Numbered from the stretch's first letter, positions 5,339-30,976 are shown. The stretch: DNA of 32,000 nucleotides from Paramicrosporidium saccamoebae KSL3 (GCA_002794465.1 MTSL01000179.1:5205-37204); one strand, 5' to 3'. The notes: generated by a model from the sequence alone, not told the origin. Program-made: numbers and translations.

Positions 5339-5384
5339 AAGACCCCTTATTAAATCCTCTGATCTGTATCTATACTGCCTCACA
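5339..5384 (+). repeat. Dispersed 46-bp intergenic element, family A, copy 1
   Basis: AAGACCCCTTATTAAATCCTCTGATCTGTATCTATACTGCCTCACA; 31/46 ungapped identity to the copy at 8770. Preceded by an 8-bp inverted repeat GGTCTTGC/GCAAGACC. Confidence 0.65.
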
Positions 5385-5517
5385 TATAATTATATACTAA
5401 GACGCATTTTATAGATTGCTACCCTCGACACTAGATTATGGAACGACCTTTTAAATTGTAACCACCAATTATCAGCGGGTACTCACAGATGCTTAACCCA
5501 ACACTCACTTGCCGGGG

Positions 5518-6765
5518 ATGCTAATGAAATTCGTAATATGCCTTGCTCTGTGTGGGGCAGTCTTGGGTAGTATCCAAAACCCAGTAGGCCTTAGAAATAT
5601 GGGAAACACATGCTACATAGCGTCAGTGCTCCAGCCACTCTTTCACGCCCCCTCTTTCCGTACCTCCGTCTTTTCGCATGCCTCTGACAGTACGCCGCAT
5701 GCAACCCTCTGCTCGCTCTTCTACCGACTGGCGGCTGGAGACAAAGCACCGGAGATGGACATTGATTTTTTACCGGCAGCAGACGTGGCCGGAAAGAAAC
5801 TATTTCAGGTTGGACGGGGTGATGATGCACAGGCCTTTTACCAATGGCTGACGGCTCATCTATCATGGACAAATGATCTCTTCAAGATAGAGTGGGAAGA
5901 GACCACCACTTGCAACGATATTCTGATTTCCAAGATAGTTGCTTCTGATACAGTCACTATCGGACAGGTCGTGAAGGACGTGCCAGTACACGAGATGCTT
6001 CGTGAAAGCGTGGAGGATGGCGTGAAAGGGTATAAAGTAGTAAAGAAGGACTTTACTGAAGCTCAGTGGGACGACTTGATGGAGAGGGGGGTTCCTGCAG
6101 AGGGACTGACTGGAGAGACACAGACCAGCATCACTCGTCGTGTTATCAATACTCCACCAATGATTGTCCTCCTTGCACACAAGTTTGCGAATACCCAAAC
6201 TCGAAAAGGAGATAAAATTGAGTATCACCAAACTTGGGACGGAACGAAATCTACCACCTTTAGCGAAACGTTTGTCCTGAATGGAGTAACCTACTACCTG
6301 CACGCCGTGACTGTCTATGTGAACAGTCGACGGAATGTGACCAATGTTAAACAAAGCCACCATTACAAAGCATACGTATGCATTGACCACAACACGAACC
6401 GTTGGTTCGAGTTTAATGATTCCGCTGCAACGCCTTCGAGCATTGCTAACATTGGTGATAATGGCTTCATGTTCTACTATGTTCGGGAAGACACTCGACA
6501 GGAATGGATAGACCTTGGCGCATTCGATATAAAATCAATCCCGAGTATGTACAGCGTTCTGGGACAGACGATGAATGCGCTTGTTGATGGACTTTCGATG
6601 CTGCTAGAGATGACGGGACTAGAACTACCCTCAACAAAACAGATAGTGAAGCTCGCTGCTGTCCCTGAGGAGGCTAAAGGTGTTCTAATCAAAGCTGATG
6701 ATGCACTTGACCGTGTTGAACACGATGAGAATAATGCAGAAACTGTTACTGATAACAAACAATAA
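5518..6765 (+). CDS. Putative secreted ubiquitin-specific protease (peptidase C19/USP fold), paralog 1
   Basis: Signal-peptide-like MKFVICLALCGAVLG; Cys box GLRNMGNTCYIASVLQPL; His box HHYKAY...WFEFNDS. Start is ATG 5518 or 5524. Confidence 0.8.
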   Translation: MLMKFVICLALCGAVLGSIQNPVGLRNMGNTCYIASVLQPLFHAPSFRTSVFSHASDSTPHATLCSLFYRLAAGDKAPEMDIDFLPAADVAGKKLFQVGRGDDAQAFYQWLTAHLSWTNDLFKIEWEETTTCNDILISKIVASDTVTIGQVVKDVPVHEMLRESVEDGVKGYKVVKKDFTEAQWDDLMERGVPAEGLTGETQTSITRRVINTPPMIVLLAHKFANTQTRKGDKIEYHQTWDGTKSTTFSETFVLNGVTYYLHAVTVYVNSRRNVTNVKQSHHYKAYVCIDHNTNRWFEFNDSAATPSSIANIGDNGFMFYYVREDTRQEWIDLGAFDIKSIPSMYSVLGQTMNALVDGLSMLLEMTGLELPSTKQIVKLAAVPEEAKGVLIKADDALDRVEHDENNAETVTDNKQ

Positions 6766-6843
6766 ATCTAACAGTGAAAGAGTATCTAGCCATTTGTTGT
6801 TTAAAGTCTGCTGGCACAGCAAATACATGGATCAGAGCGAATT

Positions 6844-7082
6844 GTTTTATTAAAGTTGTAGCGTATAGACCATCCCCCCTCAATATACCGACTTGTGGGA
6901 TCGTGCAGATATCTGGGTTGGGGCCACCAACTATAAACTGATACTGTTCAACGAGGTTGCATCATTAACCTCACAGTTTTATCAAGTGTGTGGCATATAG
7001 ACCATCTTCCTCAACACACCGGTTTGTGAGATGGCCATCTGGGTCGGTCTTTTCAATAACAAGTGGATACTGTTTAACAGGG
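6844..7082. repeat. Two tandem degenerate copies (~6844-6956 and ~6976-7082) of the ~105-110-bp family B element
   Basis: Shared blocks GTTTTAT.AAG, TAGACCATC, CCTCAA.A.ACC, TTGTG.GAT, ATCTGGGT and GATACTGTT.AAC.GG with a period of about 132 bp. A third copy lies at 25751. Confidence 0.75.
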
Positions 7083-7190
7083 CCTGCCTTGTCAAATTTG
7101 ATAAATTAATTCCTACGATCACCTGAGCCAGTCATTCGAGACGGCCCCATAGATTGCACTTGGACAGGGGACCAGGGCAGGTTAATTACA

Positions 7191-8432
7191 ATGTGGCTTT
7201 CGGTCGGTATTCTAATTGCCGCACTTATCACCCTCTCCCATGGCGCCGAGTCCAAGCAGCACAGCTCGGTGGGTCTTGTGAACAAGGGAAACAACTGCTA
7301 CATTTCAGCCATCCTACAGGCCCTTTACCATTTGCCTTCTGTGCGCGAGGCTGTGGTGCGTCAAAAGTCCAACTCTATTGTTCATACCACGTTGGCATCG
7401 CTATTCGCCCGTATGACGATGGGTACCTCGGCACAGGAAATGGACGCTGACTTTTTGGAGGCAGTGGATAGGACGAGCAAGGGATTCATTGGCTTGGCTC
7501 ACGAAGACGATCCTCATGCCTTCTTCAGCTATCTTCTGGGTCAGCACCTGCCCTGGGTCAATAACGACCAGATGATGTTTGACGTGGAGGAAACTATGGT
7601 CTATCAAGATGTCACGCTCACCACCCGGATAGCAAGGGAGAACATTCTCATTAATCACGTTTTGAGAGATCCCGCCATGCCAGTGCATTACGGGCTGGAG
7701 GAAACAATCGACGAAAATTTCGCGTTCAGCTTAACCGTAGCTGAGTGCATTAGCCTGTTTGGATCCGATTCATGTTCCTCTGATCCTCCCATCTCTCATT
7801 CTGACAGTGGAAGCGTTTCCGACCCGATGACCCTCCCTGTAACCCGCATAAGACGAGTCATCAGTACGCCCCCCATTCTCGTAATGCTGGGTGACAAGTT
7901 TAAGATGAATACTCCGCCGAACCAGCAGAACCAAAGTCGCCAAACAATGGCATTTGCGTCTAACTCGGGCAGACATTGGGATGCCTCCACCCAGACCCTC
8001 TATGATCGTGCCTTTGAGTTCCTAGGGAAGCGCTATTACCTCTATAGCACCGTCATTTACAAGCCGGGAGACGGGCTTGTCAAAGACCATTTTTTCACGC
8101 ATAGCTGTATTAATGCCGCCGAGAACCGCTGGGGCCTTTTTGACGATGGCATTGTCAAGCCTTCTGTTGAAACCTACGATCTGGGCAACAATCCGTTCAT
8201 GTTCTTTTACGTAGAAGAATCTCTCGTACAGCAATGGACGCAGATGCCGCCATTTACTGTGGATCAGATTGCTCTCCGGTATCGCTTTTTGGGACAGCTT
8301 TTTCAGTCTTTGGTGGATAGTGTCCATCTGATGATGCGTCTAACTGACGCGCCTTTCCCTAAACCAAGGGCCCCTATTGAATTTACCCCCCTCAAAGATG
8401 AGATAGTTGGCGCGTTGATTGAGGACGAATAA
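7191..8432 (+). CDS. Putative secreted ubiquitin-specific protease (peptidase C19/USP fold), paralog 2
   Basis: Signal-peptide-like MWLSVGILIAALITLSHG; Cys box GLVNKGNNCYISAILQAL; His box DHFFTH...WGLFDDG. Shares with paralog 1 a C-terminal extension (W..L/M..F....I...Y..LGQ....LVD.....T....P). Confidence 0.8.
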   Translation: MWLSVGILIAALITLSHGAESKQHSSVGLVNKGNNCYISAILQALYHLPSVREAVVRQKSNSIVHTTLASLFARMTMGTSAQEMDADFLEAVDRTSKGFIGLAHEDDPHAFFSYLLGQHLPWVNNDQMMFDVEETMVYQDVTLTTRIARENILINHVLRDPAMPVHYGLEETIDENFAFSLTVAECISLFGSDSCSSDPPISHSDSGSVSDPMTLPVTRIRRVISTPPILVMLGDKFKMNTPPNQQNQSRQTMAFASNSGRHWDASTQTLYDRAFEFLGKRYYLYSTVIYKPGDGLVKDHFFTHSCINAAENRWGLFDDGIVKPSVETYDLGNNPFMFFYVEESLVQQWTQMPPFTVDQIALRYRFLGQLFQSLVDSVHLMMRLTDAPFPKPRAPIEFTPLKDEIVGALIEDE

Positions 8433-8769
8433 CTGGATATGATGTTAGATGTGGGAACAGCCATATTAATAGGTAAGTAAACGGGTAATTGGAGACTCAA
8501 ATAGAGAGTCAGGAAAAAATCAAATGGATGCTCAAAACAAAGGTCAAACGGACGTGGGAAACTCAATGAACAATTAAACAAACAATTTCACCCTTATAAC
8601 GCGTTAATATTGTGAGGTGGTATACCCATGAACCAAGGATTCTGGTAGACGTAGTGGATTTATAACGCGCTATAAAATGTTGAAATGTTGTGTTGATCAT
8701 CATGTACCATCAGGAAAGGGGCCAGAGACATTAAGATATGATTAAATTAGCAATGTGAGATTAGAGTAA

Positions 8770-8815
8770 AAGACCCTTTATTGGTATTCCTGGCCCGTAG
8801 TTATACTATCTCACA
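8770..8815 (+). repeat. Family A element, copy 2
   Basis: AAGACCCTTTATTGGTATTCCTGGCCCGTAGTTATACTATCTCACA; 39/46 ungapped identity to the copy at 30931. Confidence 0.85.
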
Positions 8816-8934
8816 TGTTCCCTTTGTCGTCCCTTTGTCGTTCCTTTGCCGTCTCTGTTGCCTCTTTGCCATCCTTTTGTCGCCTGACCCGCTACGCACG
8901 CAGCAGGGCGTCTTGGAGCTCACAAATATGTTGT

Positions 8935-9731
8935 TTAATTATCAGGATCATCTGTTGATTGCTTTCCGGCCCACAATATGTAACGAGTCAACACATTGGC
9001 AAGCGACTTGATCACTACGACTGCCTCGTTGGCTAGTAAAACAATTCTAGAATTCTGACCAAGCTCGCCTTCCTCAGTGAATCTGCCAGGCAACGATAAC
9101 AGAAACGTTTTTAAAGCTTGCTGACCGGGCAGAGGGAGGACATATCCATTATTGTTGACGAGATCAACAACATTCCTAAGTGTCTGAACAACTTCCTTGG
9201 CAACGACTTCCCGGAGGTGCTGCACTCTAGCCATTGCCTGCACCTCTCTCGCTTGGACCGATTCACTCCATGTCTCCAGTCGCTCAGACACTCCTTCCTG
9301 GGCTCCTGCTACCGCGTTTCGCAGCCTCCCCAACAAAAAGTCAATATATGTTTCTGCATTATTTAGTCCCTGCAGAGTTCCTTCCATTTTGCGACGCATC
9401 TCAGCGGTGGGGACATAGGCGTTTTCAAGTCGTTCCAACTGGCGTCCAGCATAGCCATCGATGGTCTTTAGTTGTGGCTCAAAAGTTTCAGTGACCAAAC
9501 GCATTGAATATTCCACAGTACTGGCCCCCATTTGTACCAGACGGGAGCTGTCTTTTCCAGAGGCGTACACACGGGACAAGTGGTCCAAAGTCGAGGTGAC
9601 TAGTGCATATTCTGATAGTCTGCCAACTAGACCCGCAGAAACACCAGTGTCGGGAGCCACACTGGTCTCAGTCGCCTCGACTGATACCATGACCATCAAT
9701 ACCACCTACCCCGTCCACCCCCACAGGACAT
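8935..9731 (-). CDS. OPI1: Opi1-family transcriptional repressor (compact; probable 29-nt intron 9681-9709 after a 22-nt first exon)
   Basis: N-terminal block YASGKDSSRLVQMGASTVE...IDGYAGRQLERL and C-terminal block EVVQTLRNVVDLV...LP...KTFLLSLPGRF...RIVLLANEA match both conserved Opi1 regions. GTAGGT..TCAG intron puts ATG 9731 in frame; alternative ATGs lie at 9696 and 9690. Confidence 0.75.
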
Positions 9732-9736
9732 TGGAG

Positions 9737-9758
9737 CATGTGAAAATGGAATCACATG
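9737..9758. promoter_or_regulatory. Inverted pair of CATGTG E-boxes including a perfect ICRE/UAS-INO consensus upstream of OPI1
   Basis: CATGTGAAAA (9737-9746) equals TTTTCACATG on the minus strand, a 10/10 match to WYTTCAYRTG. A second TCACATG at 9752-9758 forms a 7-bp inverted repeat with an 8-nt spacer. Confidence 0.5.
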
Positions 9759-9984
9759 ATTTAACAATTATTTTAATAAAATATTATGTAAAAAGTACCC
9801 GTCCAATATTAATAGTCCCAATCCAGATATCCACCCCAACAAGCTAGATTTGCCCGAGGGTGGCCACCTATTAATGCGCGAGAATATTTATTTCTTAGAA
9901 GCGTCTTGATAGGCCACCGTCCTCATCTCCGCACACTAGTTATAGGATAACTATCAGGATTACCCTCACTACGCAACAGTTTAA

Positions 9985-10029
9985 TAGACCCTTTATTGGA
10001 ATCCGTGTTCCGTATATATACTCTTCACA
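9985..10029 (+). repeat. Family A element, copy 3
   Basis: TAGACCCTTTATTGGAATCCGTGTTCCGTATATATACTCTTCACA; ends 8 bp from the eIF2-gamma stop codon. Confidence 0.7.
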
Positions 10030-10036
10030 CTTGACA

Positions 10037-11483
10037 TTATCTTTGCGGGATCTCCAAATCAACCACCGCCCCGCGAGTAATCTTTCCCCACCCAATCAGA
10101 CGCCAATGGTTGTCGATACGTCGACTAAGGGCAATCTTTTCGCCAATCTCTGTGCAGGTGGGCTTGTTGAGGAGGATTTTGGCCATGTCGCCTTTGACAG
10201 CAAGCACTTTGCCGCCTGTGCAGGTGGAGCCAATATTGACCATGAGCGTCTCAGCTTTGGCAAGACGCTGCACCTTGAGATCTTCTCGAGTGTCTGCCCG
10301 CACTCCGAGGAGACGACGGAGGAGGAAATAATTAATCTCCACTTCGGAGTAGACGGGCGGCAGATGACCCACGGCTCCCAACACTTGACCAACAAGACGA
10401 TCGGCACGACAAAGAGTCGGATCAATCTTTGTGCCCACTCCAATCAAACCGCCAGGCACTGCAAAGGGAAGGTCATTGGCCTCGGCAAATAGAGAAACGA
10501 CGCGGGTAAAGATGGGACGACATACTGATTTTCCCTCCTCATTCTTCACAATAATACCCGGCCGCACTTCCACCTCATCACCAATCTTGAGCACTCCACA
10601 GAGGATACTGCCACCGGCAACTCCGCCCTTTAGATCCTGCACCTCGGAACCCGGCTTGTTGACGTCAAAGGAGCGGATCACAATCATCTTGGGCGGCACC
10701 GAGAAATCGCGTGGCGGTACGGGAATCTTCTTGACAATATACTCACAAACGGCGTCAATGTTGTACTTTAGCTGTCCCGAAATGGGAATAATGGGCGCAG
10801 ACTCGGCAGCTGTGCCACGGACAAAATCTGTAATGTTCTTGTGCTGCTCTTCAGCCACCGTTTCTCGCACCAAATCAATCTTGTTCTGCAAAATGAGAAT
10901 ATTCTTCAACTTCATAATCTCGACGGCGGCCAAATGTTCCGAAGTCTGTGGCTGTGGACAGGGCTCGTTGGCAGCGATCAGCAAAAGTGCGGCATCCATT
11001 ACCGCAGCGCCGTTCAACATGGTGGCCATCAGAATATCGTGGCCAGGGCAATCCACAAAGGAAATGTGTCTGCAATGTCAAGTATCAAGGACTGAGCGCT
11101 TACCTTAGCAATTGCATGCTGCCCCCACAGCCAGAACGCTCGCAGGGAAACGTCACCGGCTTGTCGCTTTTGTACGACCGATAGCATCCCGGACGGGGAC
11201 ACGCATTATTGTCACACTTGTAAATCTTGGCATTTGCATATCCAAGTTTGATGGTGATATTCCTCTCCAGTTCGTTCTTGAAACGCACCGTCTGAACACC
11301 CGAAATTGCCTTTACCACCGTAGACTTTCCATGGGCTACATGGCCAATAGTTCCTACAAGTTTAATAGTCACAGACGTCCATGTACCGATATTAATGGTG
11401 GCCTGGCGTTGGATAACTTCTGGCGAGAGGGCCGTCAGTTCATTGAGGTTCACCGAGGCGAGGGAGGAGGAGAGACTGTCCAT
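10037..11483 (-). CDS. GCD11: Translation initiation factor eIF2 gamma subunit; introns 11354-11386 (33 nt) and 11070-11103 (34 nt)
   Basis: QATINIG|[54 protein letters not shown] and HWRLIGWG are diagnostic. Both introns are GT-AG and restore the canonical sequence. Confidence 0.97.
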
Positions 11484-11668
11484 GGAATTTGGCAGTTCTG
11501 GACAAAACTTGAGCAGCCGGGGGTAGTCAAAGACGGAGGCTGTCAGTGGGGCAGTCTGCTTATTCACAGTACAGAATCCTTAAGGGCTCTGACACTACTG
11601 ATTGGTCAATATCGATCCCGGTTATATAGTATCCCGGTCGACTAAAGCAACCTTTCCTCAGTCGGTGA

Positions 11669-12190
11669 ATGCCGCCCAAACCCAAGAAAGACGCGGCAGA
11701 CACTTTTGGTGAGATGACATCCAACTCTAAAAATGAATCTGCAGCCCAAGTCGAAACAGAGACAGCAGTAGAGAGCAGAGAAAATGCGACTGGATATACA
11801 GTGGCAGGTCCTTCTACTTCCACGACCACACAATACTACACACCCGCTCAGTTCCTATCAAGCGGATATCATGCGCCGCATACGGCACATGCACCAACAT
11901 CTGGTGGCTATTCAGTGCCGCTAGCAGATTCCGACTATGCAACGTTTATGGCCCAGCACGGCGGACAGGTCGCTCCTCACGTAGTCTATGAAGCCAAACG
12001 AGCCACTCGTCAGATGGCCCACTATTTCGACGTTAGCCAATACAAGACGCAACTGGATCAGGGCACTGCTCCTGTTCCACCCGACCCCTCCACCCTCCCA
12101 AAACGACGGCCTACTAAAAAGGAGCTCGAGCAATTCAGGAAACGCAAGGAAGAACGCAAAAGGATACGTAACCGTTGGTTATTTGAATGA
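11669..12190 (+). CDS. Hypothetical basic-tailed, probably nuclear protein
   Basis: 173-aa ATG ORF. C-terminal RATRQMAHYFD...RRPTKKELEQFRKRKEERKRIRNRWL resembles a tail I associate with some fungal WW-domain proteins, but no WW domain is seen here. Confidence 0.7.
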   Translation: MPPKPKKDAADTFGEMTSNSKNESAAQVETETAVESRENATGYTVAGPSTSTTTQYYTPAQFLSSGYHAPHTAHAPTSGGYSVPLADSDYATFMAQHGGQVAPHVVYEAKRATRQMAHYFDVSQYKTQLDQGTAPVPPDPSTLPKRRPTKKELEQFRKRKEERKRIRNRWLFE

Positions 12191-12243
12191 ATCATTTCCA
12201 TTGGTCAATTGCCCCATAAATGGGACGATAACAAACAGCCGCC

Positions 12244-13503
12244 ATGGCGCCGCGTTTCCTTGATCGTCTGACCCAGAAACAGCGTCGGCCCAGCCGAATC
12301 CATCCCAAAAATGAGCCAACCCGCGATGATTCTGCACCCACCGTGCCCATCACACCGTGTGCCTTGGACAAGCACATTGAAGCACCGCTGCAGAGGAAGC
12401 GTAAGCTTATTACGAGTATCAACGGAGCAGTGAAGCGGGTGATGACTGGCTTTAAGAAGCTGACAATGCGAGATGTAGACTTGTCTATTGTGCATTCGGT
12501 AACATTCGAGCCGACAGTAGAGATGGTCACGACCCCAGAGCAGGAACTGAGATATCGGGCATTGAGACTCGATGAAATGTTTGGTCAGTTTTTAAGACAG
12601 TGCAGAGAGTTGACAGCCGCACAGGCTGAGCATATCTCTATCCCACCAGAACTTTTACAGGAAATGGCCTCGTATACAAAGCTCCTCCAGACTTGGTATC
12701 TAAAGGATGTACAGCCAGAAGTGGAACATGACCAACAAGATGAAAGCGACAAAGAGTGCCAATCCGAGGTGACTGACGCTGTCTGCTCATCAGATATTGC
12801 GGCCAATTCCACGACTATCCTTGACGCTACCACGGCCTCATCAGTAAACGAGTTTATTGATCTGTCTTATCAGGCAAAGGCGGCTCTGACAGAAATTGAA
12901 AAAGGAACTGTTGAAGCGGTCGAGAATAGCGATGAAGCCAACGATGTGACAATTGAGAATAGCGATCAAGCCAACGGTGTGGCAATTGAGAATGCCGATG
13001 AAGCCAACGGTGGGACGATTGAGAATGCCGATGAAACAAACAAAAAAGATGAAACGTTAGATACCGTGATGCATATTCTAGTCGAGGCCCCACAAGCCAT
13101 ATACATGCCCGAAGAACCTCTGGTATCAGAGGCCGATGTTATCTGCCAAGACGAGGTTATTTCTGTCATTCCCAAATCTCTGGTTCCAAATGATTCCATG
13201 CCAAGCCTGACTGGTCTGTTTGAAAAGCACAATTTTTCTAGTACTGAAGCTATTGATACTCTCTGTGACCTCGCCAATTCCAGGGCCATTCTCAGTGATC
13301 GTTCTGTTAGTACCGACATTTCGGACATTGGGATCCTCAGTGACCGCTCTGAAAATGCCAGTCTGACTTCAGTGCAACAGCGAACCAGTCGCTCCTCTTT
13401 TGCAAGCAACAGCAGCCGGCGTCGCATGGACCCGCATATCGCTTACATTGTGTCCCTATACGAAAGCATCCACACTCTTGTGGCCGACTCGGACTCTGAA
13501 TAG
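12244..13503 (+). CDS. Lineage-specific acidic/low-complexity hypothetical protein
   Basis: 419-aa open ATG ORF starting 53 bp after the previous stop; basic N-terminus, acidic centre, Ser-rich tail; no recognisable domain. Confidence 0.7.
   Translation: MAPRFLDRLTQKQRRPSRIHPKNEPTRDDSAPTVPITPCALDKHIEAPLQRKRKLITSINGAVKRVMTGFKKLTMRDVDLSIVHSVTFEPTVEMVTTPEQELRYRALRLDEMFGQFLRQCRELTAAQAEHISIPPELLQEMASYTKLLQTWYLKDVQPEVEHDQQDESDKECQSEVTDAVCSSDIAANSTTILDATTASSVNEFIDLSYQAKAALTEIEKGTVEAVENSDEANDVTIENSDQANGVAIENADEANGGTIENADETNKKDETLDTVMHILVEAPQAIYMPEEPLVSEADVICQDEVISVIPKSLVPNDSMPSLTGLFEKHNFSSTEAIDTLCDLANSRAILSDRSVSTDISDIGILSDRSENASLTSVQQRTSRSSFASNSSRRRMDPHIAYIVSLYESIHTLVADSDSE
12919..13041 (+). repeat. 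Coding tandem repeat, 33-bp unit x ~3.7
   Basis: VENSDEANDVT / IENSDQANGVA / IENADEANGGT / IENADETN. Confidence 0.9.
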
Positions 13504-13547
13504 ATGCTAATGTAGGAGCTGATGAATAGAATTCCGTCTTTATACAA

Positions 13548-13727
13548 TCATTGAGATCTCTTTAGATTTTCTTCAAGATTTCGCACAGCCTCCTCCCGTC
13601 GCCTTGTCAAAATGTCGCGTCGGCACATGAAAAATAGTACAGCACCGCTGCCCAACATTATTGCCCTACAGGTCATTGCACTGTGTATCAAATACCAAGG
13701 GATAAAAACTTCTTTCGGAGAAGACAT
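13548..13727 (-). CDS. Microprotein absent from the ORF track (49 aa spliced via 30-nt intron 13666-13695; 59 aa unspliced); DUF4748-like single-helix protein
   Basis: ATG 13727 to TGA 13548. Splicing GTATTT..AATGAC.CTGTAG gives MSSPKEVFIPWAIMLGSGAVLFFMCRRDILTRRREEAVRNLEENLKRSQ. Confidence 0.55.
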   Translation of the reverse strand: MSSPKEVFIPWYLIHSAMTCRAIMLGSGAVLFFMCRRDILTRRREEAVRNLEENLKRSQ

Positions 13728-13862
13728 GTTCTCCTAACTCTTAACTCTTGGCTTTTGACTGGCTCTCCTAGAACTTGTGAAGAAACGATCGAAAACGAAT
13801 GAAAAAATATTTATGCTCCTTTCCTTGTCAATCTCAGGCTTGTTGGGGCCAATTTCGCCGAA

Positions 13863-15692: not shown

Positions 15693-15727
15693 TTAATCTC
15701 GTGATAAAGTGCCGCATTAATGCATAA

Positions 15728-16653: not shown

Positions 16654-17685
16654 ATGCAGCTTTATGGCTTTCTATGTCTCGCACTGTGCGTTCAGTGCAG
16701 CGTATCTAATGGTGGTCCAAGGAACACGGACTATTCTCGACTTGGCATGGAGGAACTGCTGCTGCTTCCAAAGACAATGCTGCTAGATAGCAATGGCCAG
16801 TATATTCCCATCTATCCACAGTGGGGATCGCAGCAATGCTCTGCAAATCTTTTCCACATGGAAAGCCCTTTGGGGAGAGGCGGCAATGCAGTGGTAGTCC
16901 GTGCTCAACACCGCGACAATGGCAAAACGGTGGCGATCAAGATTTTCACCGTTGATGATTCTGAGGATAATGTCGGTCTAATTGAGGCTATTCGGACGGA
17001 GGAAGTACTGTTGGCGTTGCTCGATGATCCAAGGTTCCCGAAGCTGTGGTGTAGCTTCAAAGAGGGACAACAGGTATTTTTGGTGATGCAATATCTCGAC
17101 GGCGTCAATTTGTTCACCGAACTCTGTAGTACACCCGTCCCGTTCCGGCTTAATTTCACCATAAGAGTCATGGCAGAGATAGTTGAAGCACTGGAATTCT
17201 TGCATCGTCGCCACATCATCCACCGGGATGTCAAGCTGGAAAATATAATTGTAACACAGGATGGCCATGTGTATCTGATTGATATGGAGCATGCTGTGTA
17301 TGCACCCGATGGTGCAACTCTGCCAGCAGGGACATCTTGCAACATGGCACCGGAGATGTGGGAGTCAAAAGGGTACGATGACGGAGTGGACATGTGGGCA
17401 CTGGGATTGGCACTCTATGAGATGACCACTCTCCGACATCCGTTTCAAAATTACCTCTCCTCAAATGATAGACTGTTTGAGGCTATAAGCCGAGGCGTGC
17501 CTGCTACTGGCGAGCCTAATGTTGACCGTTTGCTAAAAAGATTATGCAGCTTGAACCCGGCGGAAAGGTGGTCATTTGCGAATAAGAATCTGGATTTAAT
17601 CAAACTACAATTACATACCATGATAGCATACTCTGAGTTAACGGATTCTACCATAGGATCCGTATCTGAACTGACAGACTGGTAG
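16654..17685 (+). CDS. Putative secreted Ser/Thr protein kinase (AGC-like, DFG replaced by DME)
   Basis: Signal-peptide-like MQLYGFLCLALCVQCSVS; GRGGNA loop, VAIK, HRDVKLEN, IDMEH, MAPE, DMWALG. Confidence 0.85.
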   Translation: MQLYGFLCLALCVQCSVSNGGPRNTDYSRLGMEELLLLPKTMLLDSNGQYIPIYPQWGSQQCSANLFHMESPLGRGGNAVVVRAQHRDNGKTVAIKIFTVDDSEDNVGLIEAIRTEEVLLALLDDPRFPKLWCSFKEGQQVFLVMQYLDGVNLFTELCSTPVPFRLNFTIRVMAEIVEALEFLHRRHIIHRDVKLENIIVTQDGHVYLIDMEHAVYAPDGATLPAGTSCNMAPEMWESKGYDDGVDMWALGLALYEMTTLRHPFQNYLSSNDRLFEAISRGVPATGEPNVDRLLKRLCSLNPAERWSFANKNLDLIKLQLHTMIAYSELTDSTIGSVSELTDW

Positions 17686-17704
17686 TTATAAAACGTATTA
17701 CTAG

Positions 17705-18452: not shown

Positions 18453-18636
18453 GGGTGAAGGGAAAAGTCTGCTATCGTTCACTATTAATCAGAGCAATAA
18501 AACCTCGGATAAATAAATGACCAACTATTAAGCTTAGTCACTCTTTAACGGCACTAAACCTGATTCGGCAATACGTCGTCAAATACCATAATGTATAGAG
18601 GTTTATAATGGCTCAAATTTATCAAGTCTAGTCTAT

Positions 18637-19700: not shown

Positions 19701-19732
19701 GGTTAAAGATTAATGAAAGAAATCTTTTCATA

Positions 19733-23017: not shown

Positions 23018-23326
23018 GCGCTCTGGCACTTGAAGATTGAGACATACACGTCATGTTTTGTGTAGTATGTTTATTAAATGTGACAACTATGAGATTTATA
23101 GTAACGATCAAGAGATTCTGATTCATGTGGGATGTGTAGTGGCAACCGAAGGGTCTTGATCCGTAATAAAGACATTGCGAGGTCGTCACTATGAATCTCA
23201 TGAGGAGTTAAAGACTCAAATCACTCGATTGCTACTATAAACCCCACATAAGGTCTCTCGATTGCTACTGCACTCGGTCGCTAATAGAAATCTCACGGTA
23301 GTAAGTTTATTAAAATGCGATGGATG

Positions 23327-24637
23327 TTAGAGATCGAGGAGGAATCGCTGGGGATCCTCAAGGAGCTGCTTCATCCGCACCAAGAAGGAGACTGCCTCAC
23401 GTCCATCAATCAGCCGATGGTCATAGGTGAGAGCAACATACATCATCGGACGCACTTCTACCTTGCCCTCTACCACCACTGCTCGCTCTTTGATGGCATG
23501 CATTCCTAGGATTGCCGCTTGGGGCGCATTGAGGATGGGCGTGCCCATCAGAGAGCCAAAGACGCCTCCATTGGAAATGGTAAATGTACCACCGGCGAGC
23601 TCCTCCAGCGCAATCTTGTTATCACGAGCACGCTCTCCCAGTTCCTGGATGGTACGTTCCACCTCCATCATTGACATTCGCTCGCAGTTCCGTAGCACTG
23701 GCGTCAGCAATCCTTTAGGTGTCGCCACCGCCACCGAGATATCTACGTAATTGTGCATGACAATTTCCTTGCTTTCCATATCAAGACGCGCATTAACCAA
23801 CGGCAATTCCTGGAGGATAGAGGCAGCCGCCTTAACAAAGGGACTCATGAACCCGAATTTGACGCCATGCTTCTTAACAAAATCATCCTTGTAGCGGTTT
23901 CGCAGAGCGAGCAACGCGGACATGTCAATTTCGTTAAATGTGGTGAGGGAAGCAGCCGTGTTTTGAGATTCCTTCATACGCTCTGCAATGCGCAGACGCA
24001 TGCGAGAGAGCGGTTCACGGCGTTCCTCACGAGAAGAGGAGGCAGAATTCTCGGGCACAAAGAGGGAACGCAAGGGTTGTTTGGAGGGCTCACTCTTGCC
24101 CTCCTGGTCCAAAATAGTCTGCTGTGGGGGCGGTCTTAATGGCTCACTGGCCGTCTTTGTATTAGTGGGAGGAGTGGTTTTCTTTGCCGACTTGCTTTCC
24201 GTCTTAGTCTCAGTTTTAGTCTCTGGCTTAGTTTCTGCTTTGCTTGGTGCCGCCTGGTCTGGATCAATCTTGAATAAATCAGCGCCAACCTCGACAGTGT
24301 CTCCAGTCTTGGCAAGATGCGCCGTCAGTAGGCCCGCTTCTGGCGCATTAACGGGGATAGTGACCTTGTCGGTTTCAATATTGGCCACTGTTTCATCCTG
24401 CTTTACCCATTCTCCAACCTCTACCATTTTAGACCAGCCACCAAGTCTTACTCTTCTCCCACGAAGCCAATGTGCCCTGAGTAATAGAGTCGGCCATGAA
24501 GGGCGTCTTTATGACCTTGTCCGCTATCCATCAGTCTGATGCAGTGTAGTACCATATCCACGCAATGCACCCCATTCGCGCCATCCCCCGAAATGGACGA
24601 GACGTGCACTTTTACGAATTCCGCCAGCTAAAATCAT
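23327..24637 (-). CDS. KGD2: Mitochondrial dihydrolipoamide succinyltransferase (2-oxoglutarate dehydrogenase E2); introns 24524-24552 (29 nt) and 24421-24451 (31 nt)
   Basis: Splicing gives a presequence-like [16 protein letters not shown]..., lipoyl domain [22 protein letters not shown] and catalytic [18 protein letters not shown]. Confidence 0.94.
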
Positions 24638-24648
24638 CAAATACTCCG

Positions 24649-24662
24649 ACAAATTAATTTGT
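24649..24662. promoter_or_regulatory. Perfect 14-bp palindrome centred in the 35-bp spacer between the KGD2 and otubain start codons; candidate bidirectional core promoter
   Basis: ACAAATTAATTTGT is its own reverse complement; it lies 11 nt from one ATG and 10 nt from the other. Confidence 0.55.
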
Positions 24663-24672
24663 TAACCTCGTT

Positions 24673-25443
24673 ATGCAGCGGCCGTCAGACGAGGACATTT
24701 TGGTGTTTGAGAACCAAATACGGGAGGAGCAGGTGAATGTGCATCCGTTGATTAGCGTGCCGCTCCCAATGAGCATTTTACAGGACGAGTATCAGGAGGG
24801 CAGCAACCCGAATTTTCTGGCAAAGATATCAGAACTGGACACGCAGTATCGCATGCTGAGGAAGACACGTGGTGATGGTAACTGCTTCTTCCGGGCGTTT
24901 AGTTTTGGACTCGTTGAGGCTATTTGGTCACTGACAGAGGAAAAGCGCAAACAGCACATTGCCATGTTGGAGGCAAACATTACAAAACTGCTGGAGGATG
25001 CCGGATTCGACCGTGTGGCCTATGAGGATTTCTACAGCGAGTTGTTTATCACTCTGCGGGAGAACGCCACTGCAGACTATCTTGCTACAGAATGGGAAAG
25101 TGCGCCCCATCGTTCTCACTCGTTGGTGGTGCTACTGCGATTGGTTGCCTCGGCCTATCTCCGTGCCCATAGTGTCGAGTACGAGCCCTTCTTGTGGGAG
25201 CTTGAGACTGGCATGACGACGTATTGTCAGAGGTTTGTAGAATGTCTGGGTGTGGAGAGCGATCAGATCCACATCATTGTATTGGGTAAGGCGCTGGGGG
25301 TGGATGTGCGAGTAGCATATCTGGATGGAGGGGAGGGACCTCTAAATACACTATACTTTAAAGCAGATGATGCAGAGGAGGCTGAAATTTGCATCAATGT
25401 CCTGTACCGGCCCGGCCATTATGACTTGCTCTATCTTCAATAA
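24673..25443 (+). CDS. OTUB1: Otubain-family deubiquitinase (OTU, peptidase C65)
   Basis: RKTRGDGNCFFRAF Cys motif, ESDQIHI and LYRPGHYDLLY His motif; no signal peptide. Confidence 0.92.
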   Translation: MQRPSDEDILVFENQIREEQVNVHPLISVPLPMSILQDEYQEGSNPNFLAKISELDTQYRMLRKTRGDGNCFFRAFSFGLVEAIWSLTEEKRKQHIAMLEANITKLLEDAGFDRVAYEDFYSELFITLRENATADYLATEWESAPHRSHSLVVLLRLVASAYLRAHSVEYEPFLWELETGMTTYCQRFVECLGVESDQIHIIVLGKALGVDVRVAYLDGGEGPLNTLYFKADDAEEAEICINVLYRPGHYDLLYLQ

Positions 25444-25472
25444 ACCATAATGTGCCCGTAAACCAACAAGGT

Positions 25473-25583
25473 TGTGACGTAGAGGTAGAGGTAGAGGATT
25501 GATTAGTTGGCTATGGGACATAGAGGCAGAGGATTGATTAGTTGGCCATGTGACGTAGAGGCAGAGGATTGATTAGTTGAGTA
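25473..25583 (+). repeat. Three tandem copies of a ~35-bp unit (family C)
   Basis: Unit TG(T/G)GAC(G/A)TAGAGGCAGAGGATTGATTAGTTGGCCA at 25473-25513 (with a 6-bp internal duplication), 25514-25548 and 25549-25583; no spacers. Confidence 0.9.
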
Positions 25584-25750
25584 TTTGAGTGCTAGAGTGG
25601 ATCGCTTTGCTGGGTATTTGAGGACAGTGGAATGTGTATCCATACTATTCTAGTATTAGCAGTGAATGGGTTTCCGTCTGACAAAGTCCGTGGTGTTATC
25701 ACCACTACTCGACAAGGGGATTAATGAAAAGAATTTCAACGAGCAAGAGT

Positions 25751-25852
25751 GTTTCTATCAAGACATACGGTACATAGACCATCATCCTCAATACACCAGA
25801 TTGTAGGATGGCTATCAGGATTATCCATAATAAGCAATTACTGTTCAACAGG
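25751..25852. repeat. Family B element, third copy
   Basis: GTTTCTATCAAG..ATAGACCATCATCCTCAATACACCAGATTGTAGGATGGCTATC..TACTGTTCAACAGG; roughly 70% identical by eye to 6976-7082. Confidence 0.75.
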
Positions 25853-25998
25853 CGTATATCTACATCTGCCTGCATCCCTACTTTAAGAATGCATGTTCCC
25901 ATTCAAAGTGATCATTACAACTCGTTTCACTTTCAACAAGCCATTGTCCACAATTTAATAAAGCATAGTGCACGAAAAGAATATCATTTTATTTATTA

Positions 25999-28900
25999 AT
26001 GCATGGCTCGATTTTCGAGCTACTGCCAGCAGGGAGCATTGACCATGCAGTTGAGGCTCGTCTGACTAACAGTGAACTCTCTGACCTGGTCATTGTCCGT
26101 GGAAGTGTCCTCGAAGTCTACACAGTCCAGGACGGTCGTCTGTGCCTCCGGTCGCGTCACCCAATGGCATCCCGGGTGCTGGACGTGGAGCGAGTGACAG
26201 GTGCTGAATACGACCGTCTGCTACTTGCCTTTGCAAATGCCCACTTTTCTGTCGTTGAATATTGTCGAGAGTTGCTTGAATTTACCACTGTATCTCTGCA
26301 TAGCTTTACGGGCGAGACACAGGACCGACTAATGGAACGTCCTACAATGGCGCTGGGAGAGCGCAAGCTCATTTCCATTGACGGAGAGGGCCGATGTGCC
26401 CTTTTACGAATTTTAGATGGCCGTTTTGCCTTGCTACCAATGGGGCGACGGAGCATTGTACTCGGCTTCTCTGCCATTGATGAGAGACTGCGAAATGTGC
26501 TAGATGTGCGCTTCTTGCCAGGCTATTTGGAAACGACAATGGCCATTCTGTATGAGCCGACCATTACTTGGCCATATCGCTATCCCGTCCGACGAGATAC
26601 TGTTGCCCTGCTGATCGTTGTAGTGGACCTGCAAAAGGAGACGCCCGTCTTTACCAAATTGGCCTCCTACGAGGGATTGCCCTCGGAGGTGCGCAGCATG
26701 TGGACGCCTGATCCCCCGCTAAAGGGAATCTTCCTACCCGGAGCAAATTTGCTACTACATGTTGAACCGGGCCATCCTACAGTTGCAGGTATTGCGTTGA
26801 ATGCGTTTGCGACACAAACCACAAAGTTGCCTGGACTGAGGAAAGGTCCCGTGTACAAGACGACTTTTGCAGGGGCAGTTTTTGTGGAGACGGATGGGAA
26901 ACTGCTAATGACGGCCGATAATGGAGAGTTGATGCAATGTCAAGTTCAGCGTGATGGAGGAGGCCGAAGAATTGAGGTGATGCCTTTTAATGGAACACTA
27001 GTGGAGGGTGTAATCAACAAAGTGACAAAATTTGCCAAAGATTTGTTGCTAATAGTCCCTGTTCTTGGAGATGCTGTCGTGTTAAAGAGGGGCACCACGT
27101 CGTTGGAAGGAAATGCTACCATGATGGATGCCGCCGAAGATGATATTTATGGCGAATCTCTGGTGGAAAAGACTACTCTCGCCAGCCATGATAATACCGT
27201 GCTGGGCAAAATTCCCTGCATTGCTCCCATCAGTGACTTTTGTGTTGGTGGGGCAGTGGAAGACTATGAGATTGTGACGTGTTCCGCAGCCGGTCGGACA
27301 GGACAGGTGAACGTCTTTAAGAAGACGCTTCCCCTCACCCGGACAACCCTATTTCAGATTTCAAATTGCAAGACTGTGTTTCCTCTGGGTGATCTGTTTC
27401 TCGTCAGCGCCGAGACATCTTCCTTACTCCTTGGGCAGGCCAATGGAATGATGGAAAGGATTGCCGGCGCCATTGTAGATACAGAGGCTACTGTATTTGC
27501 TTGCAATACGCAATTTGGGGTATTGCAAGTCACAAATAGTCTGGTGAGATTGATGACAACGGATGCGTCAATGGTTATTGCTGATCTGACAATTAATGCA
27601 TTCAGTGCGCCCATTTCGGTTCAGTATTGTGATAGCGTGGTAATGATTCGTCACGAAGATTACTCATTGTCGCTATACCATCTCAGTGCACCCGGAACCC
27701 TTGCTGAGCTTTCCACTATGACGAACATATTATGCGCTGATCTATACCAAGATGATAATAATATTGTGTTACTGGCGATTATACCTAGAAATTCGGGCTG
27801 TCTGCGCATCATCCGTCTTCAGGACGGTGAGGTACTGTTTGAGAATAATTTATTTCCCTCCCTACCAGCCGTCCTCATCCGAGATGTCCCACTGGCGCAG
27901 GCCATGACAAATGATATTGACGCAATCTGCTTCTTGGACCATGGGAAGCTGATGTGTGTCAATTCGCGCGAGTGTGGAGTAATTTTGTATCGGAGGATGG
28001 CCAATTCCTTTGTCAAGCTCCCTCCGTCCCAATATGCGGCAATGTCACTTGCCGAAGAGGTGGTCTTGAGGAGAGTCCGAATTTCCAGTAAAGAGTGCAT
28101 TCTGGTTAGCAACAAATCCAATTCATGGATCATCTCACTGGGACTACTAAACTATCCGCGTATCCATCCAGTGCGACTGTCGACCAAGCTCGTCTCCATT
28201 TCCGCCACCGATTTTGGAATTTACGAACAAGGAGGAGCCTACTCACGAGTGGTTTTGGACGAAGCCTTTGAGATTGACTATGAATGTCCTTTTCGACGGA
28301 TATCTTTCGAGGACGAGGCAGTCAAAGCAATTGTATATCACGAGCCCTCGTCGACCTATTCGTTGATTTCAACCAAATTGACTCCATTTAGTCTGCCCAA
28401 AGACGACTACGCGCCAATTTCGGACAATGTAGACTTTGTCGTTCCGGTGGACGCCTTTGCCCCCGAAGGGAGTGCCTACAGCCTCAAGCTGTTGTCATCA
28501 CGGGCGTGGAAGGTGATTGATGAGTTTGCATTGAACGAGGATGAATATGGACTGTGTCTGGCCTCAGCCACTCTGGAGACTAAACAGACGACTAGTGGAC
28601 GTCAACCATTTGTAGTCTTGGGCACTTCCATTAACCGCGGCGAAGATCGACCCGCCCGAGGACGGATTGTGATTTTTGATGTAATTGAGATTGTACCGGA
28701 AGTGGATCGACCTGAAACGGATCGACGCTATAAACTGCTGGCAGATTGTGAAATGAAGGGACCGGCTACAGCAGTGTGTCATATGAACGGCTATCTTGTG
28801 GTCAGTATCGGCGCTAAAATTATTGTGCACTCATTTGAGGACAATGACTCGCTCACCGGAGTGGCGTTTGTCGACGTGGGAGTGTATGCAACGAATCTGG

Positions 28901-29532
28901 TGGCTCTCAAAAACTTTTTTGCTGTCGGAGACATTTGCAAGTCAATTTCGTTCCACGCGTTCCAAGAAAAGCCGCCAAAAGTGGTGACTTTGGCCCGAGA
29001 TTATGAGAATTGCATGGTGACAGCCCTGGAGTATTGCGTAGATGGAACGACAGGAAGATGCTGTATTGTGGCGGCTGATAATTTGGGCAATGTGCATTTG
29101 CTCAAATATGCCCCCACATCCATGGAGAGTGATGGCGGAATGTGTCTCGTTTTTCAGGGTACCTTCCGCACTAGTGAATCGATTGTCAAAATGCGCCGTA
29201 TTGCCACAGGCAACAGTCATGTTTGTTTATTGGCAGGTCGGAGTGGCCACATTAGAGCCATTCTGCCGCTCTCTGAGACGCTAACCCGGCGACTCCATTC
29301 ATTATTGCTCCGTCTTTCCGCCAGTATTCCCCACGGTGCAGGGATCCATCCGCGATCACTACCGGCGTCCCCGCTGGTTAATCGACCGCTGGGTCGGACC
29401 GCTCTGGTGGATGCCACTTCGGTGGGGGTTCTGAGGTGGCTGGAGCTGCCCCGGATGGCACGTGGCCATTTGCTAGCTACAATGGGCATTTCCAGTGTCA
29501 ATGCCGCCCTTGCCGAGGCCATTAACTTGTGA
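25999..29532 (+). CDS. CFT1: Cleavage and polyadenylation specificity factor 160-kDa subunit (CPSF1/Cft1)
   Basis: TVSLHSF, DGEGRCA, RNVLDVRFLPGYLETTMAILYEP, and C-terminal GEDRPARGRIVIFDVIEIVPE, GDICKSISF, ADNLGNV are typical of CPSF160; 1177 aa; intronless. Confidence 0.9.
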   Translation: MHGSIFELLPAGSIDHAVEARLTNSELSDLVIVRGSVLEVYTVQDGRLCLRSRHPMASRVLDVERVTGAEYDRLLLAFANAHFSVVEYCRELLEFTTVSLHSFTGETQDRLMERPTMALGERKLISIDGEGRCALLRILDGRFALLPMGRRSIVLGFSAIDERLRNVLDVRFLPGYLETTMAILYEPTITWPYRYPVRRDTVALLIVVVDLQKETPVFTKLASYEGLPSEVRSMWTPDPPLKGIFLPGANLLLHVEPGHPTVAGIALNAFATQTTKLPGLRKGPVYKTTFAGAVFVETDGKLLMTADNGELMQCQVQRDGGGRRIEVMPFNGTLVEGVINKVTKFAKDLLLIVPVLGDAVVLKRGTTSLEGNATMMDAAEDDIYGESLVEKTTLASHDNTVLGKIPCIAPISDFCVGGAVEDYEIVTCSAAGRTGQVNVFKKTLPLTRTTLFQISNCKTVFPLGDLFLVSAETSSLLLGQANGMMERIAGAIVDTEATVFACNTQFGVLQVTNSLVRLMTTDASMVIADLTINAFSAPISVQYCDSVVMIRHEDYSLSLYHLSAPGTLAELSTMTNILCADLYQDDNNIVLLAIIPRNSGCLRIIRLQDGEVLFENNLFPSLPAVLIRDVPLAQAMTNDIDAICFLDHGKLMCVNSRECGVILYRRMANSFVKLPPSQYAAMSLAEEVVLRRVRISSKECILVSNKSNSWIISLGLLNYPRIHPVRLSTKLVSISATDFGIYEQGGAYSRVVLDEAFEIDYECPFRRISFEDEAVKAIVYHEPSSTYSLISTKLTPFSLPKDDYAPISDNVDFVVPVDAFAPEGSAYSLKLLSSRAWKVIDEFALNEDEYGLCLASATLETKQTTSGRQPFVVLGTSINRGEDRPARGRIVIFDVIEIVPEVDRPETDRRYKLLADCEMKGPATAVCHMNGYLVVSIGAKIIVHSFEDNDSLTGVAFVDVGVYATNLVALKNFFAVGDICKSISFHAFQEKPPKVVTLARDYENCMVTALEYCVDGTTGRCCIVAADNLGNVHLLKYAPTSMESDGGMCLVFQGTFRTSESIVKMRRIATGNSHVCLLAGRSGHIRAILPLSETLTRRLHSLLLRLSASIPHGAGIHPRSLPASPLVNRPLGRTALVDATSVGVLRWLELPRMARGHLLATMGISSVNAALAEAINL

Positions 29533-29739
29533 CCCACTTATATTGAATATACACTTTTCTTGGCCAATAGATCTATAATGGAATATAGAACAGTCGAGTT
29601 CTCCCATAATCACCTTTGGTATGTGGTGGGCTGATTCGCGTTTAAGAGATGACAATACCTATACGGAACACGATCAAACGATGATAGGTAACATAATCAA
29701 CTCTTATTTAGCTGTACGTAGGTTGTTGTGACCCTACGG

Positions 29740-29786
29740 AACATTTTTTATTAGAAACCCTGGCATTTAGGTGTACTATTTCACAC
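29740..29786 (+). repeat. Family A element, degenerate copy 4
   Basis: TTTATTAGAAACCCTGGCATTTAGGTGTACTATTTTCACA aligns to the 3' 40 nt of copy 2; ends 36 bp before the Aurora ATG. Confidence 0.55.
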
Positions 29787-29822
29787 TAGTGTATCTTTCA
29801 ATTAAATGAATTCCCATTAAAC

Positions 29823-30851
29823 ATGGTGAAGGGCGGGAAGGAAAATTCCGACCCGCTTGTGGGTAAGAATGAACTTTTTGGTGGAAGGGACCAACTCGGT
29901 AGCGGGAAAGATCAACTTGGTAGTGGCAAAGACCAACTCGGTGGTGGAAAAGTCCAAGTCACTAGCGGAAAGGACCCCCTCAGGGAAAACACACACACAT
30001 TGAACAGTAAACTCGACGGACTTGCTCTTTCTGACACGGAGCAGAAGAACCGCAAATGGTCGTTGGCTGATTTTGAAATCGGAAAGCCGCTGGGAAAGGG
30101 CAAATTTGGGCACGTCTATTTGGCCCGGGAACGACGCTCAGGCTTTATTGTGGCCCTCAAGATTATCTACAAGGCCGAGCTGGAGGCGGCCAAGGTGGAG
30201 AAGCAACTCCGACGAGAAATTGAGATTCAGTCACATTTGCGTCATCCTCACATCCTACGTCTGTATGGATATTTCTACGACGAAAAACGCGTATATCTTA
30301 TTTTGGAGTATGCACCACAGGGCGAATTGTACAAGACTCTGCGAAGGACCGGCAAGTTTGAAGAGGCCACTGCCGCCCGGTACATTCGCCAAATGACTTT
30401 GGCACTGCAATATCTACACAGTCGTCATGTCATCCATCGCGACATTAAGCCAGAAAACATTCTGCTCGGTCTGAATGGCGAGGCGAAAATTGCCGATTTT
30501 GGGTGGAGCGTTCATGCGCCTGGGACTCGACGCCAGACTCTATGTGGCACGCTGGACTATTTGCCTCCGGAAATGGTGGAGGGGAAGGAACATGCCTGGT
30601 GGGTTGATTTGTGGAGTCTCGGCGTGCTGGCATATGAGTTTGTGGTGGGTGCGCCGCCCTTTGAAGAGGCTGCCGGTTATAGGGCAACCTATCGGAGGAT
30701 TGCCAAGGTGGATCTAAAAATACCCGACACTGTCTCCCCCGATGCTGCTGATCTCATTAGAAAGCTGCTGCAACACGACCCTGAGAAACGGTTGCCCTTG
30801 GAAAAGGTTTTGAGACATCCATGGATTGTAAAGCATTGTATTCCCAAATAA
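29823..30851 (+). CDS. IPL1: Aurora kinase (Ipl1/Ark1-like)
   Basis: KEN box; [57 protein letters not shown]. Confidence 0.95.
29877..29981 (+). repeat. Coding 21-bp tandem repeat x5 in the Aurora N-terminus
   Basis: [35 protein letters not shown]. Confidence 0.85.
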
Positions 30852-30930
30852 ATCAATTCGTGGTGGGATACTAGCGCACATACTAATAGACGTAGTCAGG
30901 CAATCTTAGTATTATGTGGTGGCTAATGAT

Positions 30931-30976
30931 AAGACCCCTTGTTGAATTCCCTGGCCCGTAGTTATACCATCTCACA
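30931..30976 (+). repeat. Family A element, copy 5
   Basis: AAGACCCCTTGTTGAATTCCCTGGCCCGTAGTTATACCATCTCACA. Confidence 0.85.

Follow-up and report, generated by a model that had tools for sequence, protein, structure and literature searches.

A short dispersed intergenic repeat in Paramicrosporidium saccamoebae, possibly the relic of a small mobile element

MITEs, or miniature inverted-repeat transposable elements, typically measure ~100-800 bp, and introner-like elements are introns derived from MITEs. Other short intergenic units include the bacterial repetitive extragenic palindromic sequences and bacterial interspersed mosaic elements (REP/BIME), which are 30-60 nt long, have imperfect dyad symmetry, lie in spacers with gene 3' ends and are sometimes arranged as inverted pairs, and the short CCC/GGG-like and TATA-like motifs found near start codons in Encephalitozoon. 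MITEs have been described in the microsporidia Nosema bombycis and N. antheraeae (PMC4405373). Paramicrosporidium saccamoebae KSL3 is an intranuclear amoeba parasite of the Rozellomycota, whose genome has a reported repeat content of 0.53%, mostly simple or low-complexity sequence, with no dispersed element described (PMC5701793). Here we describe a family of short intergenic repeats, family A, in a 32,000-nt stretch of this genome (the window; MTSL01000179.1 positions 5205-37204, assembly GCA_002794465.1), to which all coordinates refer. In total, 45.6 kb of the 57,732-bp contig were read (window -2809 to 42817), and all counts, including the copy counts of family A, are from this part of the one contig. 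We put at about an even chance the reading that the copies of family A are relics of a small (~60 bp) non-autonomous element of the MITE or foldback type.

Copies, termini and inverted partners of family A

Family A is a real repeat, far beyond chance. An earlier note on this DNA had reported five same-strand copies at 5339, 8770, 9985, 29740 and 30931, and all five were found, all on the plus strand (Table 1). A repeat search of the window listed the five copies in register, and the consensus proposed by the earlier reader, with at most three mismatches allowed, matched at 8770 and 30931 and 0 times in 100 shuffles. An nhmmer profile built from the five copies recovered those five at E = 2e-12 to 4e-8, with nothing else on the plus strand of the read sequence below an E of about 4. 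Pairwise identity across the ten pairs is 59-85%, with 39/46 positions identical between copies 2 and 5, exactly as had been claimed, and the copies are indeed almost gap-free, with one single-base indel. Divergence is spread over the whole unit at a ratio of transitions to transversions of 86:50 (pairwise counts). In addition, four of the five copies fit the degenerate pattern GACCCYTTRTT-N19-TATACY-N0-1-YYTCACA, for which 0 matches are expected by chance and which had no match in the JGI/ENA metagenomes, GTDB (596 Gb, prokaryotic) or IMG/VR; the family A profile likewise found nothing at E<1 in ~400 kb of other organisms' loci. Taken together, the pattern and profile statistics and the absence from public collections support a real family that, as far as public data go, is lineage-specific. 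All five copies are intergenic, as the note had stated, and with a non-coding share of 21% in the 45.6 kb read the chance of this placement is 0.21^5 = ~4e-4. The density of about one copy per 6 kb given there does not hold, the number found being five copies in 45.6 kb.

The 46 bp originally described as the element are the core of a longer unit of ~60 nt, which has ~15 nt more on the left. The 3' edge of the unit is sharp, in that similarity stops directly after TCACA in every copy, and four copies start about 13-16 nt to the left of the core with TGTGAG, TGCGAG, TGTGA or TGTGG. These 5' starts (TGTGAGAT, TGCGAGGC, TGTGA and TGTGGTGG) are the inverse of the respective 3' ends (ATCTCACA, GCCTCACA, TCACA and CCATCTCACA), and from this correspondence and the similarity to the left of the core, the unit is defined as ~60 nt long with short terminal inverted repeats. 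Such repeats, which the note had proposed to look for, are present in four copies but absent from copy 3, with pairing at 9/9 positions in copy 2 (P = 0.005), at 7/8 in copy 1 and at 5/5 in copy 4, and an interrupted match in copy 5. In copies 1 and 2, the terminal pairing is held by different bases (GC/GC versus AT/AT). Beyond the repeats themselves, the 10-mer CCATCTCACA shows no enrichment in the spacers. For the five-copy alignment RNAalifold predicts no pairs, so no consensus RNA structure was obtained, and single-copy fold z-scores range from -2.6 to +1.1. Rfam searches with family A returned nothing at gathering score nor at E <= 1, ARAGORN found no tRNA-like sequence in the family, and with regard to coding capacity there is neither a frame open across copies nor an associated open reading frame (ORF).

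Three reverse-strand copies of differing certainty accompany the five forward ones. The best of these, at 8611-8656, had been missed by the earlier reader; it was detected by nhmmer at E = 0.04 at first and at 3e-8 once in the profile. It is located 113 bp upstream of copy 2, with which it forms an inverted pair with outer ends TGTGAG … CTCACA. The 70 nt left and the 50 nt right of each copy were searched for direct repeats, and the 10-bp repeat TTATAACGCG flanks this reverse copy on both sides (P = 0.0025 versus shuffles). Among six copies this is the sole candidate for a target-site duplication, which is suggestive but no proof. Degenerate reverse remnants had also been suspected at two other places. 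The one at 29645-29690 is probable, as it shares the 13-mer TATACGGAACACG with copy 3 read in reverse complement (local-shuffle P = 0.002), although by profile alone it is not significant (E = 16). The one at ~23124-23160 is a weak lead: at 23126-23158 both ends of the reversed unit are kept with 13 nt missing in total length, but the alignment is not significant (P = 0.28).

With the reverse copies at distances of 113 and 50 bp, two of the five forward copies have a nearby inverted partner. Inverted pairs with outer TGTGAG/CTCACA ends are as expected from foldback or long-terminal-inverted-repeat derivatives, or from adjacent or nested insertions. The 10-mer TATGTGGTGG followed by CT.AT is found at 29620-29635 and at 30912-30929, 120 nt upstream of copy 4 and abutting copy 5, respectively. 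In the first of these places, the reverse remnant may have split a forward unit's 5' end from its core, which would make a nested insertion. An 11-bp tandem array (TCCCTTTGTCG, 3.2 copies, 8819-8853, decaying to ~8885) starts 4 nt past copy 2.

Table 1. Forward and reverse copies of family A and the candidate target-site duplication, in window coordinates
Feature	Coordinates	Strand	Sequence features	Site
Copy 1	5324..5384 (core 5339-5384)	+	5' extension TGCGAGGC pairs with 3' end GCCTCACA, 7/8	189 nt past stop of ORF 4416-5150; 133 nt before USP-like ATG at 5518
Copy 2	8753..8815	+	Best preserved, with copy 5; perfect 9-bp terminal inverted repeat ATGTGAGAT / ATCTCACAT	Convergent spacer, USP-like 7191-8432 (+) / Opi1-like 8935-9690 (-)
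Copy 3	9985..10030	+	One-base deletion near 3' end; no recognisable 5' inverted repeat	7 nt from eIF2-gamma stop 10037-10039 (-); between two minus-strand genes
Copy 4	29727..29785	+	Most diverged; termini TGTGA … TCACA	208 nt past CFT1/CPSF160 stop; 37 nt before Aurora ATG; between plus-strand genes
Copy 5	30915..30976	+	Exact consensus match; 5' end TGTGGTGG only partly complementary to CCATCTCACA	80 nt past Aurora stop; 666 nt from stop of minus-strand gene 31642-32817
Reverse partial copy	8611..8656	-	3' 33 nt well kept, 5' part decayed	
10-bp direct repeat TTATAACGCG, left member	8594..8603		Candidate target-site duplication	
10-bp direct repeat TTATAACGCG, right member	8660..8669			
Probable degenerate reverse copy	29645..29690	-		50 bp upstream of copy 4
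Possible reverse copy with internal shortening	23126..23158	-	TGTGGGATG … AAGGGTCTT	Convergent SKI2/KGD2 spacer

Position relative to genes and origin of the family

The dual promoter and polyadenylation (poly(A)) role proposed in the earlier note is not supported by the geometry of the copies, which fits neither a promoter nor a dedicated poly(A) module. All five copies are on the plus strand whatever direction the neighbouring genes run, with copies 1 and 4 both residing between plus-strand genes. The distance to the next ATG is 133, 37 or 3-31 nt, two copies have no downstream plus-strand gene, and the nearest stop codon is found 7-338 nt away, leaving no fixed distance or orientation. Three copies had been placed upstream of plus-strand genes, and this stands for the USP-like gene (133 nt) and Aurora (37 nt); the third gene, at the 31008 locus, is unconfirmed, and for the corresponding ORF, 30980-31393, neither a relative in the PDB nor conservation in the sister species introduced below was found. 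Unless that ORF is real, the neighbours of copy 5 are Aurora (+) and a minus-strand gene. The minus-strand AATAAA reported 153 nt past the Opi1-like stop and 40 nt past the eIF2-gamma stop is present at both places. Among the copies, however, this motif is found in 3/5 (copies 2, 3 and 4) and lies behind a minus-strand gene only in copies 2 and 3, and within 250 nt of the stop codon an AATAAA occurs at only 10 of the 25 genes in the stretch. The copy 2 motif is the sole AATAAA within 250 nt past the Opi1-like stop. In copy 3, TTTATT at 9992-9997 is the first minus-strand AATAAA past the eIF2-gamma stop, which makes an incidental contribution at that gene plausible. One trend speaks against this negative reading: elements of family A and of a second intergenic repeat described below, family B, occupy 8/18 tandem or convergent spacers versus 0/8 divergent ones (Fisher ~0.03), a trend that weakens to P ~0.1-0.24 with spacer length allowed for.

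For a mobile-element relic, the mobility, enzyme and neutrality that we infer for family A would take the following form. Within the Paramicrosporidium lineage, a transposase whose gene lies elsewhere or has since been lost would have recognised the ends TGTGAG…CTCACA and spread the element, either through excision and insertion or through copying. Insertions would survive only in the non-coding ~1/5 of the compact genome, which would account for every copy being found between genes. The copies would now drift neutrally, and any effect on neighbouring genes would be incidental, an example being the copy 3 AATAAA 40 nt past the eIF2-gamma stop. As the flanking genes are unrelated to one another (USP-like, Opi1-like, eIF2-gamma, CPSF160 and Aurora), segmental duplication cannot explain the spread.

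The note had suggested the relic of a short interspersed nuclear element (SINE) or a MITE, and a repeat family with a MITE-like relic at its origin best fits the anatomy, namely the sharp 3' edge, the terminal inverted repeats, the inverted partners at two loci, the 10-bp direct repeat around one copy and the transition-rich divergence, together with the lack of any trait of an RNA gene or of a positioned regulatory signal. The SINE half of the suggestion is not supported, there being no tRNA-like or RNA polymerase III (Pol III) head (no tRNA and no Rfam match at E <= 1). The sequence after TCACA also differs in every copy, a simple array is found only past copy 2, and the forward copies are without duplications. 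A tRNA-derived element or a small nucleolar RNA was rejected on the lack of a tRNA, of an Rfam match and of boxes, and a likeness to the TFIIIC B box (TTGGAATCC versus GGTTCGANNCC) was discarded as the invariant C is missing in all copies. A solo long terminal repeat (LTR) does not fit either; its TG…CA termini are present, but the 4-6 bp duplication is absent and the unit has only ~60 bp versus ~100 bp or more. Because target-site duplications were tested for and not found at the forward copies, family A is not filed as a MITE; most likely it arose and spread like one.

Several observations weigh against a mobile origin. Left of copy 1 (8 kb read) and right of copy 5 (12 kb read), no further copies were found, and the reported repeat content of 0.53% (PMC5701793) makes a very high genome-wide copy number unlikely. 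There is no transposase among the genes called on the 45.6 kb. No direct repeats of at least 6 bp flank any of the five forward copies, so that the check for target-site duplications that the note had proposed yielded the 10-bp candidate at the reverse copy 8611-8656 and none at the forward copies, where this hallmark of cut-and-paste insertion would have counted most. Copy 3 is without a terminal inverted repeat, and the terminal inverted repeat is significant by itself in one copy only, copy 2. Finally, all five good copies share a single orientation (two-sided chance 1 in 16), and the three reverse copies are far more decayed, which would not be predicted by neutral decay of randomly oriented insertions.

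The most serious alternative, which we nevertheless regard as rather unlikely, is that family A is a co-opted or native gene-boundary module, that is, a cis element that ends or insulates transcripts in the manner of a terminator or 3'-end hairpin, is selected in 3'-end spacers and might perhaps also offer AATAAA on the opposite strand. The spacer counts above argue for it in that every A and B copy lies in a spacer with at least one gene 3' end, but this bias against divergent spacers fades once spacer length is considered, and the nearest stop codon may be anywhere within the range given. Copies 2 and 5, the two best preserved, both lie between convergent genes, and forward copies are better conserved than reverse ones, while the orientation is the same beside plus-strand and minus-strand neighbours. 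A poly(A) contribution would be consistent with the first AATAAA past eIF2-gamma being in copy 3 and the only one past the Opi1-like gene in copy 2, but copies 1 and 5 lack the motif, and so does the vicinity of most genes. Similarly, copies 1 and 2 retain terminal pairing through different base pairs, but there is no consensus fold, identity down to 59% is poor for a 46-nt functional module, and the element is absent at the syntenic sites of (distant) relatives. We hold it improbable that family A is a eukaryotic counterpart of REP, by which we mean a strand-locked, hairpin-ended boundary module that is mobile-derived and selected in 3'-end spacers. If it were, transcripts in this genome of 300-bp spacers would be stopped or processed with the help of the module, and the same-strand arrangement and the better-kept forward copies would be signs of selection.

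Comparably improbable is a local exchange of sequence without transposition, by gene conversion or small duplications among spacers of a ~25-kb neighbourhood. All copies do lie within 25.6 kb of one contig with none in the 20 kb of flanks read, all five are on the same strand, the forward copies are without target-site duplications, and the genome-wide repeat content is reported to be very low (0.53%, PMC5701793). However, the genes between the copies are unrelated and similarity stops abruptly at the unit edges, five ectopic conversions of a 60-bp tract without flanking homology would be mechanistically awkward, and the inverted partners and the 10-bp direct repeat point to insertion. That the units are instead intronic or introner-like, residing in spliced introns of transcripts longer than the ORFs suggest, is very improbable, although the public gene models place them there. 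The NCBI 427-amino-acid Aurora model (29621-31169) is reproducible only with the introns 29714-29789 (GTACGT…CACTAG), which is essentially copy 4 plus 17 nt, and 30828-31016 (GTAAAG…AGGCAG), which contains copy 5, and copy 1 is inside the span of the NCBI 812-amino-acid UCH model (3459-6765). The 5' end of the unit, GTGAGA, also resembles a splice donor. Against this, the genes on either side of copy 2 converge on it and those on either side of copy 3 are both antisense to it, no acceptor is found at a fixed position past TCACA, and the NCBI models look like the output of an ab initio predictor. As the N-terminal extension of the Aurora model has no counterpart in any relative, and as the UCH model fuses separate genes or several ORFs across copy 1, including a gene that has a paralogue with an independent start and a signal-like peptide of its own, the predicted introns around copies 4 and 5 are regarded as prediction artefacts. 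Least probable of all, to a degree that we would call highly unlikely, are plus-strand genes for small non-coding RNAs (~60 nt) that would carry a stem at their termini. The common orientation of all copies and the terminal stem kept by different base pairs in copies 1 and 2 would agree with such genes, but there is no consensus structure, the folding energy is no better than that of shuffles in 3/5 copies, and no Rfam family was matched even at E <= 1. In addition, no C/D, H/ACA or Pol III boxes occupy conserved positions, no part is tRNA-like, and a paralogue identity of 59-85% is unlike that of a functional RNA family.

In order to place the family in time, the copies can be compared with a close relative. 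Contigs in the JGI metagenomes 3300042203 and 3300042204 have 80-82% nucleotide identity to P. saccamoebae in two genes and reveal an unsequenced sister species. Between P. saccamoebae and this sister, 38% of 357 fourfold-degenerate sites differ (Jukes-Cantor 0.53), and the Jukes-Cantor distances between A copies range from 0.17 (copies 2 and 5) to 0.59. If the copies are neutral, these distances would fit a family that diversified at about the sister split or later, and the youngest pair (2 and 5) would be roughly three times younger than that split. A lineage-specific burst, if true, predicts empty sites in the sister species. Two sister contigs end ~300 bp short of the copy 5 site, and the sister spacer near copy 5 is unalignable beyond ~50 nt from the neighbouring stop codon. 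An Aurora-based metagenome scan returned no relative closer than 78%, and no family A element was found at the syntenic loci of relatives with 46-48% identical CPSF160, which are distant relatives.

Neighbouring genes and other repeats

The called genes carry the Pfam labels UCH, Opi1 (weak), eIF2-gamma and protein kinase, with which the gene names of the earlier note mostly agree. The CPSF160/CFT1 protein (1177 amino acids) is encoded at 25999-29532. The public gene models at 3113-3568, 3459-6765 and 29621-31169 look wrong. A protein with an RRM, a zinc knuckle and an RS-rich region, encoded by ORF 3011-3568 with its first ATG at 3113, is uncalled in the public models. Two tandem paralogues with UCH/USP domains, at 5518-6765 and 7191-8432, are 31% identical, and a database search with one of these USP paralogues found no relative, only itself. 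Both paralogues, and the protein kinase at 16654-17685, begin with a hydrophobic stretch that resembles a signal peptide, unusually for enzymes of these classes. Within the eIF2-gamma gene, a 34-nt spliceosomal intron (GTAAGC…TTGCAG) is found at 11070-11103 (-), just before a conserved motif; introns in P. saccamoebae can be very short. Further to the right lies a tandem pair of paralogues, 31642-32817 and 32959-34218, which are 38% identical and combine an N-terminal Cys-rich domain with repeats rich in Thr/Ser. This Cys/Thr-rich family has relatives in metagenomes only, and it is here that contigs from the JGI samples 3300042203 and 3300042204 show their 80-82% DNA identity.

Family B, the second intergenic repeat, is ~110 bp long and has copies at 6851-6964, 6983-7094 and 25761-25864, all on the plus strand, with E = 1e-27 to 8e-33. 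Weaker family B matches are present at 9909-9962 (+) and 9790-9845 (-), and a weak B-like match is located just upstream of copy 3 of family A. The family B 10-mer TGTGAGATGG, the inverse of the family A 3' end, lies within a small hairpin that retains two of its base pairs through changes in both partners. Homology between the two families was considered and rejected, as this 10-mer is all that they have in common, the profiles do not cross-match and the alignments are not significant. The OTU-CPSF160 spacer contains a 35-bp tandem repeat at 25486-25579 (2.7 copies with 93% matches), ~180 bp upstream of a B copy.

Implications and comparison with known systems

On present evidence, family A is a modest gain in annotation and no new mechanism. 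P. saccamoebae is positioned near the base of the Microsporidia lineage, and a lineage-specific dispersed element, if true, would mean that mobile DNA was active during genome reduction in a Microsporidia-related group. If mobile, family A would provide a marker with which to date that activity and to find empty sites in the sister species, and if its copies mark transcript ends, it would help to find out what delimits transcription in eukaryotic genomes that are very compact.

Among known systems, the motifs that compact genomes of fungi and microsporidia carry at promoters and 3' ends resemble family A in being intergenic in a gene-dense genome, but the Encephalitozoon-type motifs consist of a few bases bound to the start codon, whereas family A has 46-60 nt without fixed spacing or orientation. 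Introner-like elements share with it a short repeated unit, placed by gene predictors in introns at three loci here, whereas two copies of family A are outside genes or antisense and no conserved donor and acceptor pair is present. The likeness to bacterial REP/BIME extends to unit size, dyad symmetry, 3'-end spacers and occasional inverted pairs; family A differs from them in its eukaryotic host, in a dyad of only 8-9 terminal bases, in having no known RAYT-type enzyme and in the five copies seen. Solo LTRs are similar in their 5'-TG … CA-3' termini, short inverted repeat and intergenic dispersal, but family A is far too short for one and has no duplication and no internal retroelement sequence in the 45.6 kb. 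Compared with MITEs, family A has a smaller unit (~60 bp), no duplication at the forward copies, no parent transposon seen in the 45.6 kb and a strand bias, and like MITEs, both those of Nosema and in general, it is short and non-coding, has terminal inverted repeats in four of the five copies and is dispersed in non-coding DNA as diverged copies.

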